A DNA stretch of 64,000 nt. Source: Sminthopsis crassicaudata (lineage: Eukaryota). The stretch's first letter is position 1. Every line of letters begins with the position of its first letter. The DNA is taken from NCBI RefSeq assembly GCF_048593235.1, contig NC_133620.1, positions 117,988,852 to 118,052,851 on the forward strand. The letters run 5' to 3'. Under the pieces are notes generated by a model. The model did no database searches. It saw only the letters and a program-made list of their open reading frames with translations, and had not been told where the DNA came from. This document shows, piece by piece, positions 1-7,839 of this stretch. The translations under genes and the position numbers were made by a program.

Positions 1-817
1 GCATACCCAGACACATAAAAAGCTACAAGGGATCTTAGAAATGTCATCTAAAAAACATAGCTATGAAAATAGGCACAAATGTATCTGTAAAACACTGTTG
101 GTGGAACTAGATTAATTCGACCACTGTGTTAAGCAACTTGAAATTATGTTTAAAATATGTTTAAAATGTGACTTAAAATGTCCAGACTCTTTTATAGATC
201 TCCCTGCTAGGTTTCCATTCCAAAGAAGTCAAAGACAGAAAGGGCCCAAATATTTCCAATATATTCATGATAGTACCTTTTATGATGTCAAGAAACTGAA
301 ATAAAACAGATGCCTATTGATTGGGGAACAACTAAAGAAGTTACAGTATGTGAATGTAATGATTAATAAGAAATTAGTAAGAAATAATATGAATTCAGAG
401 AAGCATGGGAAATTTTTTTTATGAACTGTGGGAAAGTAAAATAAGTAGAACCAGTAAGATAATGCACACAGAAATTATTACAATGTAAATGACAGAAAAA
501 AAAAAAAGTTGAATTCTATCTTTGAGATTGTAAATTCCTAAGGATAGGGACTATCTCTTTCCTTTTTCTGTAAGCACTTAGCAACAGTGCTTGGCACATG
601 ATGGCTATTTAATGTTGTTTGAATGATCTGATTGGAAACTTGAGTGGAAGAAGTTAACAGCATGGAAACAGAATAGTTATTCCCCCAAGAAGTTCCCCAC
701 AATCTTCATCAAACTTTCCCCAACTCAGGTCCCGAAAGAAGAAAATCTTTTCAACCTCATCTTTATGGTATTCACTTAGGTTTTTAGTGAGATAAGCCAA
801 CTATTTGATCCCCTTAC

Positions 818-3374
818 CTCAGTAGAACTGAGCTGCTGGTCACCAACAAAAGCAGCATGAAGGTGATAACCCGACAGGCCGAGGGCACTCATATGCACAG
901 TGTGGGTGACCTGAGGAGTGCAGGTTAGCAAGTTAATGGAGAGCTCTGCTCTTCCTTACCATTCAAGGAATCCCTTAACATAACACATCTATGAAGGTCA
1001 TACTGATTTGCAATTCCTAAATTGCATTCTGCATCCACTACTCCCTCCCCACTGGGAAGATACCAGTACCACTTTGAATAAAAAAGTAAAAGGATACAGG
1101 ACTTGCAGGGTTTCATCCTTCTATTTCAAATCATGCAGCCTTGCTAGAGGCTAGAAATAGGAGGTGGCTTGGAAAGACTTAAATCAACTGTTGCTGAGTG
1201 AAAGGAGCTGAACCAGAAGATCACTATACACTTCAACAACAATACTGTATGAGGATGTATTCTGATGGAAGTGGAAATCTTCAACATAAAGAAGATCCAG
1301 CTCACTTCCAGTTGATCAATGATGGACAGAAATAACTACACCCAGAGAAGGAACACTGGGAAGTGAATGTAAATTGTTAGCACTACTGTCTATCTACCCA
1401 GGTTGCTTATACCTTCGGAAGCTAATAATTAATGTGCAACAAGAAAATGGTATTTACACACATATATTGTATCTAGGTTATATTGTAACACATGTAAAAT
1501 GTATGGGATTACCTGTCATTGGGGGGAGGGAGTGGAGGGAGGGAGGGGATAATTTGGAAAAATGAATTAAAAAAAAAAAAGAAATAGGAGGTGGTAGAAT
1601 GGAGGGATTCAGAAATAGACTGGAACAAAGGAGTGGTGGTCTGGGGGTCTCTATAGAAAAATGAGAACACCTGGAAGTGGCTGCTCAGAACCTTGTTGAC
1701 AATGAATTTCACTCCCTCCATCTGTGCCGGAAATACATCTAAAATACAGGAATAAAAGAAAAGATAAGTCTAGACTTGGGCCCTCTAATCACAAGGAAAC
1801 CTCCTCCCAAAGAGAAAAAAATTATTTCTTGAAGGCTATTACTCTCTCCTTAAACCTTGGACTGTGACCTAATACTCCTGAGAATATTCACTCAGATTTT
1901 AGGAAATTATCTCATCAATTTTACCTCTGTCACTTCAGGTCATTTCTTTGTTCCTGTTGACACCTTTCAATAGAGGTCTCTCATTATGATTCAGTGACAC
2001 TACCATCCTAGTTTCCTAACAGATGTTCCCCATTTCTAGTCTCTCTTCCATTCCAATATATCCTTCGTGCTACAATAAAAATATTCTTCCATATGCTCCT
2101 CTTCTAAACTCTTTCAATGATTCCCTACTACCTAAATAAAGAATTGCATAAATGCCTGTCATTTAAAGCCCTCAACAAGCTAGTGCCATTTTATCTCAAG
2201 CCAATCCCTTTATATAGTCTAGACTCTAACCGAACCGGACTACTCTATCCCCAGAATACACCCTAATCTTCCTAACCTCCATGCCTGGGGTCATGCTGTT
2301 CTGTATACCTGAAAAGTCTCCCCTCTCTTTATCCCCTCCCTTAAAAGCCCTAGGAGGGGTCAGACACAAGGCACAGGGCTAGTGAGCAGATAAGGCCCTT
2401 TCCCAAAAAAGTCTCAAAAGACATTTGTTATTATTATTATTATTATATCTGCTTGCCCCAGGTGATCCCTGGATAGTCTTCTTGATTATTTATCCTTCCA
2501 TCCCTACCCTTGGAGGTTCAGGTTCAAGCTGGAGTGGAGTTTGAGGCAAACCCTGCTTCCTCTAAGAAATTTCTGAGTCCTTCTTTTACCCTTTCCCTTT
2601 TAGACCTCATAGACACTTCTCTAATGTACTTAAAAGGCATCATCACTTATTATAGTCTTCATACTTTTTACACCTCTCTACCACATCTCTCTACAACTCA
2701 GCTATGAGGGCCTATTTGCTTCCTCTTGCCCAAGATTCTCCATCTCTGCACAGAATAATACTCTCCCTTCTCATCTTCATTTTCGGGCTCCCTCTGAGGT
2801 TCAGCTCAATCCCCATCTTCTGCCGGAGAACTTCTCCAGAAGACACTCCCCCCTGCCTCCTGCCCACCAAGAAAACCTTCCATTTACATTGTATCTATTG
2901 CAGGTTACACAGTTTGTTAGCACTGTCCATTTACATTGTATCTATTGAATGTTACTCAGTTTGCACGTAGACCATTTACATTGTATCTACTGAATGTTAC
3001 ACATTTGTTTGCACGTTGTTCACACGATTAAATGTGAGCTCACAGAAGTCAGGGCTGCATTTGCCTTTCTCTGAATCCCCCGCACTTCGTCCAGTTCTTG
3101 GAATACAATAAGAGCTTACTTAATAAGTTACCTGGATAGGATTCTAATTTCCAAACTAGACGAAAATGATTGATATCCCTCCTGGCTAAGACGTGCAGGA
3201 CTTGGCAAACAATTGGTGCTCAATCAATGACTAAGAGAGTTTTCTGCAAGAATTCCCACCTTTGCAGAGTCGATGCAATTCATCGAAACTCCCCGGATTG
3301 GGCAGCGGCTCCTCCCGACGGGCGCCTCGGCGGGGCAGAGCTCCCAGAGGAGCCAGACCCAACATGTTCCCCAT
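818..3374 (-). CDS. TOMM40L: TOMM40L (mitochondrial import receptor TOM40B), 5' partial; the gene continues off the left edge of the window
   Basis: Coding exons 3374-3260 (MGNMLGLAPLGALPRRGARREEPLPNPGSFDELHRLCK), 1738-1671 (DVFPAQMEGVKFIVNKVLSSHFQ) and 910-818 (VTHTVHMSALGLSGYHLHAAFVGDQQLSSTE). All have GT-AG boundaries and compatible phases (115/68/93 nt). The peptide matches the recalled TOMM40L N-terminus. Confidence 0.96.
1168..1579 (+). mobile_element. 5'-truncated young LINE-1 (3' UTR + polyA) in a TOMM40L intron
   Basis: Near-identical to the 3' UTR of the L1 at 14946-15831. Has an A-tail and a perfect 15-bp TSD AGAAATAGGAGGTGG at 1153-1167 and 1580-1594. Confidence 0.92.
2353..2551 (+). 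pseudogene. Inverted duplicated fragment of late TOMM40L exons (end of one exon + intron + start of next)
   Basis: 2372-2389 encodes HRASEQ and is followed by a degenerate donor ATAAG. After about 130 bp of intron-like sequence, 2516-2551 encodes VQVQAGVEFEAN. TOMM40L reads ...HRANEQ|VQVGVEFEAN... across an intron (recalled). Confidence 0.75.
2880..3016. repeat. Three-copy 45-47 bp tandem repeat, core CCATTTACATTGTATCTA(T/C)TG
   Basis: Units start at 2880, 2927 and 2972, within L2-like sequence. Confidence 0.85.
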
Positions 3375-3763
3375 CTCAGCCTGGGGGAGGGGTGGGGGTG
3401 GGGTCCAGGAGAGGGGTCGCTACTGACCTCCCCAGCCCCCGCCGACCCCACCCCCAGCTACCCAGCACCCCAACCCCAGGTGCCTCGACATGCTCGGACC
3501 CTGCAGCTGGAATGGAGGAGGGGAGTGGAGGAAGAGAGAGATATCAGTGGGACAGACGGGCAATGTATATCCCCTTTGCACCCTACCTGTCGCCCCCAAA
3601 TCATGCCCAGCCCCAGCATGTACCCTCCAAGGGGCTCCCTCGCCCCGCCCGCCGCCCCCGGATCCTGCAGCCTTAAAAAGCCCACCCCTCCATCCTCCTT
3701 TGCTTTCTCCGCTGTGTCCAGAGGGCCCCGAGTCCAGCCTGGCTCTGCATCCACGGCCCTTAC

Positions 3764-4420
3764 CTGCTCAGGCCACCGCGCCACCCTTCTACCCCCGGCA
3801 CACCCCGGTCATCTTGATGGGGGCGGCCATCTTGAGTAAGGGCAGAGCCCCGGCTTCACAGTGCCCTCCTAGCGCGGCCGCGAGCGCCATCTTGGACCCT
3901 GGCAGCGAGGGGAGGAAAATACCACCTGGGCATTAGGTGCCACCTCCCATCCTTATTTCACCAATGAGGGAGAGGATCGCTATGTTCCAGAGGCCAATTA
4001 GAAGAAAGAAAATCGTGGCGTGGAGGGCTGGGAGAAGGGAGATTCCAGTACTGTGAGCTTGAATGGGTCCTGGGAATTGATCTACGCTGAAACCCATTCT
4101 TCCAAAGCTACGGGGAGAATCCCGAGGATGCCCACCCTCTAATCGTACTCCCTCTTCTGCGCCAGGCACGCAGCGCAGAATGTGCCATGCCTGGTTCCCC
4201 GGGAGTTTGCATGAGTCTGAGGGACTTCATCCCCCCCTTTTAAAGGCATATATTGGGATTTCGTAAGTGTATTGAACTTACAGTGTAGAAACACTTCCCA
4301 CCCACGCGCCTTGGCAACCCCTCTCTGAATTAGAGCTGTCCGGGGCTTCGAAGGGTGGGAACGATTTGAACGTGGTTTTTCTAAGACAGCATCTTCCCGA
4401 CCTTGATACCACCAATAAAG
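3764..4420 (-). promoter_or_regulatory. TOMM40L CpG-rich promoter and non-coding first exon
   Basis: Minus-strand donor CAG|GTAAG with the exon ending at 3764; acceptor of the next exon at 3381-3382. CpG-rich. YY1-type GCCATCTT motifs at about 3823-3834 and 3884-3895. Confidence 0.7.
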
Positions 4421-6160
4421 GACGACTCTGGACTTCACAGACCTGCAACAAGTGTTTATTATGCGAGTTCTAGGTACAGACACTGCAAAGCGTTAAGGAT
4501 ACCAAGAAAAGGAAGGAGGACGAAGAGGGGAACATATAGTCTAAAGGGGGAGATAACGTGCAAACAATTATGTACAAACAAAATATACGGGCTAAATTAG
4601 AGTCAGTCAGAAAGGTGCAAGCATTAAGGGAAATCGAGAAAGGCTTTTTGCAGAAGGTGCCAACTTAGGGGGACTTGAGGAAACCTTGGAGATGAGGAGG
4701 AAGAAATTTCCAAGCATGCGGGACAGCCAGTGAAGATCCAGAAGTTGAGAGCTGGAGTTATGTTGTAGAAACTTGTAGTGACAGTATCAGTTCCTACTCA
4801 AGGGTTTCGTTTATAGCTATTGCTGTTCAGTCATTTTCAATTCTGTAGGACTCTTGATGACTAATTTTTTGGTAAAGGAATTGGAGTTATTTGCCATTTC
4901 CCTCTCCAGTTCATTTTACACATGAGGAAACAAAGGCGATCTGCGGTAAGTGACCTGCCAAGGATTACATGGCTAGGATAGGGCAGGGCTATTTCCAGAA
5001 TGCATTAAAAATCAACTTAGTTTTCTTGTTTGTGTAGAGGGAGGTAGAGTAGAGTTAGATGGGAAAGGAATATGGAAATTAGAAAAATATAGCAATTTCC
5101 TTTACAAGAATGCCATTTTTTTTTAATAGTTCAACTCTTCCTCCAGAAAAACCCATAAGAAAAGCAGGGTAACAGAATCTTGCAGTCCTCACTCCCACTT
5201 TTCTCTATTCCTCAACCCACAAGCCTGTTAGGATCAGTAAAGGTGCCTTCCAGCAACTTGTTTTGAGAGAGGGAAAAAATAGGAATAGATTCCCTAAATC
5301 TTTAGTTGTTTTTCCCAGTGAATATCATATATTTACAGGATTATATGCTGGAGTCAGAACAAATAAGCCCCTACCCCTCAAAACAATTCTGATCCCCAGT
5401 CAGCTCCCTAGGCCCTAAGCAGTCTCTCACCCCATGGTCAATTCTGTGAAACTTGCTGACTCAGGCTCTGCTGACCAGCTACAATTTGCAGCAGATTAGA
5501 TAATCAAATGACTGGAAGACCTTTAACCTTACAGCACTCTGAATCCCCCAATCAGTCTCTCTCCCAATCTCTGTTTCCAGAGCCATTCACTTGGTGGGGA
5601 GTAAAGCAATCCTAATTATTTTGGTTGGAGGCTGGGCAAGTCATTGATTATCCATCCCCCAAAAGAACACACATTCTGATCTTCCAAATTCCATTACATA
5701 TTAACCTACAGAAAAGGCAAAAACAACAATCTTTACCCTCTGACCCCAAATCTCAAATATCCCCATCCTCCAAGGCTCATTTCTGTACTTACCTTATAGA
5801 CTTCCTCCCTGACCCACACCCCACTGTCTTTAAAGGTTTCCCCAAAATTGCAATTTAGAGAAGAGGGAGAAAAGGTTCCCTCAATAAGAGATGACAAAAC
5901 TGAGAGCCAGAGGAATATATGAAAGACTTTCCAGAGAAGGATTCGGGAATTCTGGTCCTTTCTACCTTTCCAATCTATTTATTCTACTGGGATCTAAATG
6001 CTCCATAACATCTTTGCACTAATAGGTGTTCCTCCATGCTGGAGTTCTCTCCTTCCAACCTCTGATTCTTAGAATACTTAATTTATAAGACTCAGCTCAA
6101 TTTCTCTAGGAGGACTTTCTTGTTCCTGCTCATTCCTTCTATTTAATGGGTGCTCGCTTG

Positions 6161-6935: not shown

Positions 6936-7839
6936 ATGAAGCTGCTTACCCTGACTGTTCTGCTCCTGACCATCTGCTCCCTGGAAGGTATGTGCTGGGG
7001 ACAAGGGCAAACGAATCCTGGACAGGCAGACCACCACAGTGGTCCTCTCTCTTTGCAGACTTGGTCCTAGGAGGAAGGTTTCCTGGGTCTTTCCCCATTT
7101 CCCCTAATCCAGTAATCTGGTTCTTTAAAGAAGCAAGGAGCCTGAGACCTGGGTTTGGGCTATTTCTGGAGAGTAAGTCTCTGAACCAGACACCTGGGTT
7201 GAGACTGTGCTTGTTGTGTGGGTCTGCCCAGGAGCCCTGGTTCGGAGACAGGCAACAGAACCGGAGGTGACTGACTTCTTCACTCAATACATTCGGAAGC
7301 TGGCAGATATAGGCAAGGATGTAGCAGAGAAAGTTCAAGTCCCAGAGGTGCAGTCCCAAGTTCAGTAAGTATGGAAAAGGGAAATGGGCTTTGGGAGTTG
7401 GAAGGCCTGCCAGTAGGGATAAAGGGATTAAGGTTGAGGGACAATGGAGTTGGAGAGCAGTATCCTTTAGTAATTCCCATTGCCATTCAATATTTTTTGG
7501 CCATAGGCAAGAGCAGTGACAATGAGAACCTTGTAATTCATGTATATATTTCTAAGAAGGTTCCCTCTTTCCTCTTCCCCCAGCCAAAGCTAGACTAGAG
7601 TTTGATAATCTGGGCCAGTCTGACCTAACACATTCATACATTCCTGCCTCACCTCCCCTTCCCACCCTCCCCACAGTTTCTATACCCATTCATATTGATT
7701 CTTGTATTTTTCTATTCCTAGGGCTTATCTTGAAAAGTCACATGAACAAGTGATCCCACTGGCCAAGAAGGCCTTAACAGACACGATAACCTTTTTCAGC
7801 TCTCTTGTGGAGTCAGGCAAGAAGGCTGCCGACCAATAG
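6936..7839 (+). CDS. APOA2: Apolipoprotein A-II precursor, 100 aa
   Basis: Exons 6936-6987 (MKLLTLTVLLLTICSLE), 7232-7364 (GALVRRQATEPEVTDFFTQYIRKLADIGKDVAEKVQVPEVQSQV) and 7722-7839 (QAYLEKSHEQVIPLAKKALTDTITFFSSLVESGKKAADQ*). Total 52+133+118=303 nt. Has the ALVRR propeptide and fits synteny. Confidence 0.97.

Follow-up and report, generated by a model that had tools for sequence, protein, structure and literature searches.

In a 64,000-nucleotide stretch of the genome of the dunnart Sminthopsis crassicaudata (the window, in what follows), positions 2372-2554 constitute a 183-nt inverted DNA copy of part of the very gene in which they lie: they reproduce the tail of coding exon 7, the whole of the intron that follows it and the head of coding exon 8 of the dunnart's own TOMM40L, and are embedded within the first coding intron of that gene. 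TOMM40L is encoded on the minus strand and the copy reads in sense on the plus strand, which makes it antisense inside the TOMM40L pre-mRNA. We propose that it originated in a template switch during replication or repair, is tens of millions of years old, has decayed neutrally since then and has at most a minor effect on its host gene; taken jointly, these elements furnish the best explanation of the observations and, in our estimate, a probable one.

The copy and its source

The coding exons of TOMM40L are numbered here from 1 to 9. Coding exon 2 begins at 1738 and runs downward along the minus strand, and the exons past coding exon 3 lie off the left end of the window; the 3' exons were reached through the neighboring gene APOA2, whose protein led to a locus of the same species, L003 (GCA_048593235.1, CM109184.1). 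The stop-free frame over an APOA2 exon (window 7177-7365) has as its single protein match the Sminthopsis crassicaudata apolipoprotein A-II, at 100% identity. Coordinates in L003 equal window coordinates plus 3065, and the two sequences are identical at the places compared, with the part of L003 that matches a run of N in the window (L003 9334-9500) and window 1668-1705 left out of the comparison. The annotation of L003 includes a called Porin_3 gene of 308 residues on the minus strand. Along its sense strand, exon 7 ends at 1936, the intron occupies 1935-1804 and exon 8 starts at 1803; this intron, the second-to-last coding intron of TOMM40L, is 132 nt long and runs from GTGAGG to CAG. An intron in the same position, in phase 0, is present in the dunnart, the dugong (231 nt) and the echidna (82 nt), in agreement with the gene structure that a first-pass annotation of the window had given.

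In a blastn search of 4.7 kb, window 2372-2554 matched the opposite strand of L003 at 1953-1771 (E = 1e-25). The source, on the minus strand, corresponds to window positions -1112 to -1294 and hence falls outside the window; the copy, inverted, precedes it by 3,483 nt in the pre-mRNA and is situated 705 nt from the 5' splice site of intron 1 and 633 nt from the 3' splice site of that intron. MAFFT and global alignment both gave 138 identities in 168 aligned bases, along with 30 gap columns distributed over three gaps, namely surpluses of 14 nt and 1 nt that the copy shows around its (TTA)6 microsatellite, and a deletion of 15 nt from the copy. The microsatellite, at 2428-2446, accounts for the 15-nt surplus and expanded after the duplication, whereas the 15-nt deletion follows position 2486. 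The copied intron has retained its pyrimidine tract and terminal CAG, while its donor has decayed from GTGAGG to ATAAGG. As the alignment continues straight across the spacer between the two exonic parts, that spacer is the real intron, matching it base for base, a correspondence that had been set in advance as a check on the first-pass annotation.

The similarity ends sharply on either side, although the source goes on as conserved exon, indicating that the copied piece was about 183 nt long from the outset. The 100-nt flanks show no similarity to the continuation of the source, with 848/2000 and 1404/2000 shuffles scoring as high. The 36-mer encoding VQVQAGVEFEAN at 2516-2551 has a single occurrence in the window, against 0 expected by chance; likewise, the copy is unique in the 64-kb window and is the top self-match of the entire gene. 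No similar copy is found in the TOMM40L genes of the dugong or the echidna. The features of the copy and of its host are collected in Table 1.

The first-pass annotation had delimited the inverted segment as 2353-2551. The greater part of this span, from 2372 onward, belongs to the copy, but 2353-2371 does not, and the true right end lies three bases further, at 2554. The peptide HRASEQ followed by ATAAGG on the plus strand, which it had reported from 2372, is there in the letters. However, it had derived this donor from GTAAG by one G-to-A change, whereas, measured against the actual source donor, the copy is two transitions away. Furthermore, the two-residue insertion that it had read does not exist, since 2516-2521 are the last six bases of the intron and the exonic part commences only thereafter.

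Table 1. Coordinates in the window of the inverted copy, its parts and the host-gene features (K2P, Kimura two-parameter distance)
Feature	Position	Strand	Details
Inverted copy: coding exon 7 tail, intron and coding exon 8 head	2372..2554	+	183 nt; blastn, MAFFT and global alignment
Copy of the exon 7 tail (last 18 nt)	2372..2389	+	HRASEQ versus real HRANEQ; 16/18 identical; both changes derived in the copy, the dugong agreeing with the source
Copy of the whole intron	2390..2521	+	132 nt in copy and source; 92/117 aligned bases identical; K2P 0.257
Copy of the exon 8 head (first 33 nt)	2522..2554	+	VQAGVEFEANP versus real VQVGVEFEANT; 30/33 identical; three changes derived in the copy
TOMM40L coding exon 1	3260..3374	-	ATG at 3374; splice junctions and exon peptides; start of the called 308-residue Porin_3 gene of L003
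TOMM40L first coding intron, host of the inverted copy	1739..3259	-	1,521 nt; splice junctions read
TOMM40L coding exon 3	818..910	-	splice junctions and exon peptides

Origin of the copy

The flanks of the copy contain no poly(A), and the 30 nt on either side hold no direct repeat of at least 5 nt, so that there is no target-site duplication. Given the presence of the intron, the absence of poly(A) and of direct repeats, the single occurrence in the window and the lack of a match to any Rfam family, the copy can be classed neither as a retrocopy or transposon nor as a known RNA gene. A processed (retro) pseudogene fragment was rejected on the first of these grounds, the intron being not only present but alignable, together with the missing poly(A) and target-site duplication; an interspersed repeat or transposable element, on its occurring once in 64 kb with the gene's own junction as sole match; an L1-mediated insertion, on inspection of the flanks; and membership of a known RNA family, on the Rfam result. 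An origin from the paralog TOMM40 was likewise discarded, as the TOMM40 intron differs and the spacer aligns with TOMM40L's own intron, and chance resemblance is inconsistent with the blastn E-value obtained through the intron. The earlier suggestion of a DNA-level, non-retro inverted micro-duplication of the gene's own late junction is thus upheld by the aligned intron, the opposite orientation and the bare flanks. The two alternatives set against it in advance, an unrelated repeat and a misassembly, both fell away: the only match in the sequence searched is the gene's own junction, and a divergence of about 18% together with insertions and deletions excludes an assembly artifact. Words sampled from window 1-6000 were recovered at a fraction of 0.99 in sequencing runs of two samples and of 0.5-0.7 in runs of three further studies.

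These features point to a template switch in replication or repair as the origin of the copy. We posit a single template-switch or templated-insertion event, of the fork stalling and template switching (FoSTeS) or microhomology-mediated break-induced replication (MMBIR) type, during replication or the repair of a break, in which the polymerase would have moved to the opposite strand a few kilobases away, used a short piece of it as template and then returned. Inspection of the junctions of the copy revealed no convincing microhomology; a decay of about 10% per lineage would erase 2-8 nt of it.

Age and mode of evolution

The exonic and intronic parts of the copy have diverged from the source to different degrees: 46 of 51 bases are identical (90%; K2P 0.106) in the former and 92 of 117 (79%) in the latter, with transitions and transversions between copy and source standing at 19:11. 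All 5 exonic differences are derived in the copy, with the dugong carrying the state of the dunnart source at each. Conversely, dunnart source and dugong disagree at five sites, and at every one of these the copy agrees with the dunnart, which places the making of the copy on the marsupial lineage. The observed exon-to-intron divergence ratio of about 1:2.4 follows from there being one freely evolving lineage in the exons as against two in the intron, as the neutral decay of a copy predicts. Of the 19 transition differences, 10 keep a G-U wobble pair and 9 give an A-C mismatch, with no excess of the former, as expected by chance, and there is no sign of selection for pairing in these differences. 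The copy therefore has the appearance of a sequence that is decaying neutrally.

The divergence per lineage amounts to about 0.10-0.13 substitutions per site. The general mammalian rate is 2.2e-9 per site per year. A rate of 1.37e-9 has been used for Antechinus (PMC9290055). The age of the copy, calculated from divergence only and from 168 bases, a number of sites small enough to entail a large error, comes to about 45-60 million years at the faster of these rates and about 75-95 million years at the slower. It would appear that the event took place tens of millions of years ago, later than the divergence of marsupials from eutherians and probably earlier than the origin of the genus.

Predicted pairing within the pre-mRNA

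Cofolding of the copy and its source yielded 141 intermolecular pairs, among them uninterrupted helices of 34, 19, 16 and 15 bp. The gain relative to the arms folded separately was -141 kcal/mol, as compared with -8.4 +/- 3.7 when the arms were shuffled. In the minimum-energy fold of the whole 3.95-kb interval, run with positions 1668-1705 masked, 143 of the 183 copy bases are paired, all of them with the source. The predicted duplex takes in the donor of the real intron, its pyrimidine tract and its acceptor, and extends over the first 33 nt of exon 8. Folding thereby supports the potential pairing that the first-pass annotation had proposed between the copy and the two splice sites of the real intron, each of which lies within this duplex. 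The predicted helices are, in principle, long enough for ADAR.

The 15 nt deleted from the copy (source L003 1853-1839) hold the best branch-point-like motif of the real intron, CUCAC. As its counterpart is missing from the copy, the branch region is looped out of the predicted duplex, which is probably a coincidence.

Should intron 1 not yet have been removed by the time coding exon 8 is transcribed, the two arms may form an imperfect duplex of about 140 bp, which would bury the 5' splice site, pyrimidine tract and 3' splice site of the real intron. We envisage that this would affect a minor fraction of transcripts at most, with some intron retention, exon skipping or adenosine-to-inosine (A-to-I) editing as possible outcomes; a retained exon 7/8 intron would hit an in-frame stop. 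Removal of intron 1 can precede transcription of the source, which lies 3.5 kb downstream, and the gene is intact, with a normal 308-residue protein annotated. Our reading is that the copy is likely a tolerated relic with at most a minor effect, and we would not expect it to be a selected regulator.

Alternative explanations

That there is no real duplication at all, but a chance similarity, a member of a repeat family, a TOMM40 fragment or an assembly artifact, might be entertained given the match at the protein level, which by itself is weak (tblastn E of about 0.01-0.1 for a 4-kb target). However, the DNA alignment extends through the intron at E = 1e-25, the TOMM40 intron is different, no second copy occurs in the window and no Rfam family matches; moreover, a divergence of 18% with insertions and deletions is incompatible with a chimeric read or a collapsed assembly, and independent samples contain the stretch. 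We hold the odds of such an error to be negligible. A more substantive alternative accepts the duplication but has it templated by RNA, with nascent, unspliced TOMM40L pre-mRNA being reverse-transcribed to patch a double-strand break in the same, nearby gene. This would account for a copy taken from the transcribed strand of the same gene and including the intron, as nascent RNA does, as well as for its shortness, its sharp ends and the absence of a flanking duplication. Yet nothing in the sequence demands an RNA, there being no poly(A), target-site duplication or untemplated tail, and the local inverted insertion of a piece templated by nearby DNA is the commoner documented route (PMC8756506, PMC11724301), for which reason we deem an RNA template improbable.

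A further alternative concerns not the origin but the fate of the copy, which might be a selected cis-acting RNA element, kept because its long-range duplex tunes the output of TOMM40L. It could do so by masking splice sites, resulting in intron retention with the in-frame stop, in exon skipping or in nonsense-mediated decay; by recruiting ADAR; or by bringing the exon 7 donor near the exon 2 acceptor, thereby favoring a circular RNA of coding exons 2-7. The predicted duplex, which is strong, recurs in the global fold, spans the donor and the acceptor and leaves the branch-point-like motif in a loop, is in line with such a role, but changes that preserve pairs are not in excess (10 wobbles versus 9 mismatches among the 19 transitions), and the arm is interrupted by two 15-nt insertions or deletions and a growing microsatellite. 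Similarly, the copy has survived over tens of millions of years, yet divergence in its intronic part has proceeded about twice as fast as in the exonic parts, as it would in free sequence. There are precedents in that long-range pairs obstruct splice sites and are enriched in editing sites (PMC8052449) and in that an inverted duplication in the human CHM gene causes exon skipping (PMC8756506); against these stands the opportunity for intron 1 to be removed before transcription has covered the 3.5 kb to the source. On balance, we regard a selected regulator as unlikely. Its fullest form, a marsupial-specific cis-regulator whose duplex would hide both splice sites of the second-to-last coding intron with the branch region looped out, seems to us less likely still. 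If true, the output of TOMM40L would depend on the speed of intron 1 removal relative to transcription; the gene would carry a kinetic switch of its own, and ADAR editing or a circular RNA comprising coding exons 2-7 would be by-products. The origin by template switch followed by neutral decay that we favor has its own points to answer: junction microhomology, the hallmark of template switching, is unreadable after a decay of about 10% per lineage; an insertion templated by unspliced pre-mRNA would give an identical product; neutrality is judged from 168 aligned bases in a single species; splicing or editing may in fact be affected; and the persistence of a strong predicted duplex in an essential-looking gene could mean that it is useful, and hence tolerated.

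Genomic context and other repeats

APOA2 (100 residues in three coding exons; window 6936-7839, plus strand) stands head to head with TOMM40L at a distance of about 3.5 kb, and FCER1G follows next on the minus strand, from about 10388. The gene order in the dunnart agrees with that of the dugong locus, in which NR1I3 lies tail to tail with TOMM40L. A search with a eutherian TOM40B query (275 residues) returned no marsupial protein among the 120 matches listed, which did include proteins of monotremes, birds, reptiles and amphibians. The missing marsupial TOM40B is a gap of the protein search and not biology, as the dunnart assembly has the called 308-residue gene. When the open frame of TOMM40L exon 3 was compared with protein cluster representatives, eutherian fragments alone were recovered; compared with proteins of similar length, it gave no dunnart TOMM40L candidate. 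Exact protein look-ups of three open frames of the window found no record.

Intron 1 additionally contains a tandem array of three 47-bp units (79% matches) at window 2879-3014, about 325 nt from the inverted copy and unrelated to it. Two weak matches link other parts of the gene. One is inverted, between window 577-631 and L003 1582-1634, in the introns after coding exons 3 and 8 (74.5% over 55 nt, E = 6e-4), and is probably an old interspersed repeat. The other is direct, between window 2837-2885 in intron 1 and L003 1185-1231, immediately beyond the stop codon of TOMM40L (73% over 49 nt, E = 0.001). The introns of the echidna TOMM40L (L001 3100-9200) are full of one or two short repeat families in both orientations, which form dozens of intragenic inverted pairs, none of them at the exon 7-8 junction.

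Significance and relationship to known systems

The dunnart TOMM40L offers a clean, natural and old case of a gene with an antisense copy of its own splice junction. It illustrates that slips in replication or repair can build a predicted kilobase-range pre-mRNA duplex across two active splice sites, and that an allele of this kind can reach fixation and be tolerated over tens of millions of years; the comparable allele of human CHM causes disease. It also calls for caution in annotation, given that this segment bears exon-like and splice-like signals on the other strand from the gene. The dunnart is now a laboratory marsupial, reports on which include cell lines, genome editing and transcriptomes (PMC12527288; bioRxiv 10.1101/2023.11.16.567318). 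Its TOMM40L copy is consequently a ready test of the weight that a distant intronic antisense arm carries under co-transcriptional splicing.

The first-pass annotation knew of no description of such an arrangement. This holds for TOMM40L, as the literature contained no paper connecting that gene with a structure of this sort, but not for the kind, since an intragenic inverted duplication of a gene's own exon region, with an origin in replication error and a predicted pre-mRNA hairpin, is already described. The human case, published in 2021, is an intragenic inverted duplication in CHM with a predicted pre-mRNA hairpin, exon skipping and an origin of the FoSTeS/MMBIR type (PMC8756506). As in the dunnart, an inverted copy of the gene's own exon and flanking intron lies within an intron of the same gene, is ascribed to a FoSTeS/MMBIR-type replication error and is predicted to form with the real exon a hairpin that disturbs splicing. 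The CHM duplication, however, is a recent, perfect, pathogenic allele of 1.75 kb, separated from its source by about 0.3 kb; its junction microhomology can still be read, and exon skipping has been demonstrated. The dunnart copy, in contrast, is 183 nt long, 82% identical to a source from which it lies 3.5 kb upstream, and derived from an exon-intron-exon junction and not a whole exon; it is old, belongs to the reference genome of a healthy species, and has an effect that is a prediction from folding.

Pairs of intronic inverted repeats, such as inverted Alu elements or other short interspersed nuclear elements (SINEs), form double-stranded RNA, serve as ADAR substrates and drive exon circularization. 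An arm of about 180 nt, an identity of about 80-85% and a kilobase-scale spacing are typical of them and are matched by the dunnart pair, for which the same consequences are conceivable. Nevertheless, the dunnart arms are not transposons, and one of them is a functional junction, with the result that the predicted duplex would hide splice sites where Alu or SINE pairs flank exons. Conserved long-range complementary regions in pre-mRNAs, termed pairs of conserved complementary regions (PCCRs), obstruct the splice sites that they pair with and show an enrichment of editing (Kalmykova et al. 2021, PMC8052449). They are defined by conservation, mostly span tens of nucleotides and are depleted of active splice sites (PMC8052449). 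The dunnart arms share with them a stable predicted duplex between complementary arms, formed by intramolecular pairing over kilobases in one gene. The pairing in the dunnart is nonetheless far longer and lies over two active splice sites, and its arm is known from one species, whereas PCCRs owe their definition to conservation across species.

In terms of its formation, the copy resembles the templated insertions of the FoSTeS/MMBIR class in being a short inverted stretch from a nearby template devoid of transposon hallmarks, while differing in that the defining junction microhomology is no longer readable. In yeast, foldback insertions at replication and break-repair junctions are mostly of 5-34 bp (PMC11724301). 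In terms of its product, an inverted genic duplicate that gives rise to a transcript with self-complementary arms invites comparison with hairpin RNA loci. Inverted duplication of gene fragments underlies the origins of plant microRNAs and the endogenous small interfering RNA hairpins of mouse oocytes. The arms of those hairpins are adjacent and are processed into small RNAs that act in trans; in the dunnart, by contrast, the arms are 3.5 kb apart in a protein-coding pre-mRNA, from which one of them leaves with intron 1.

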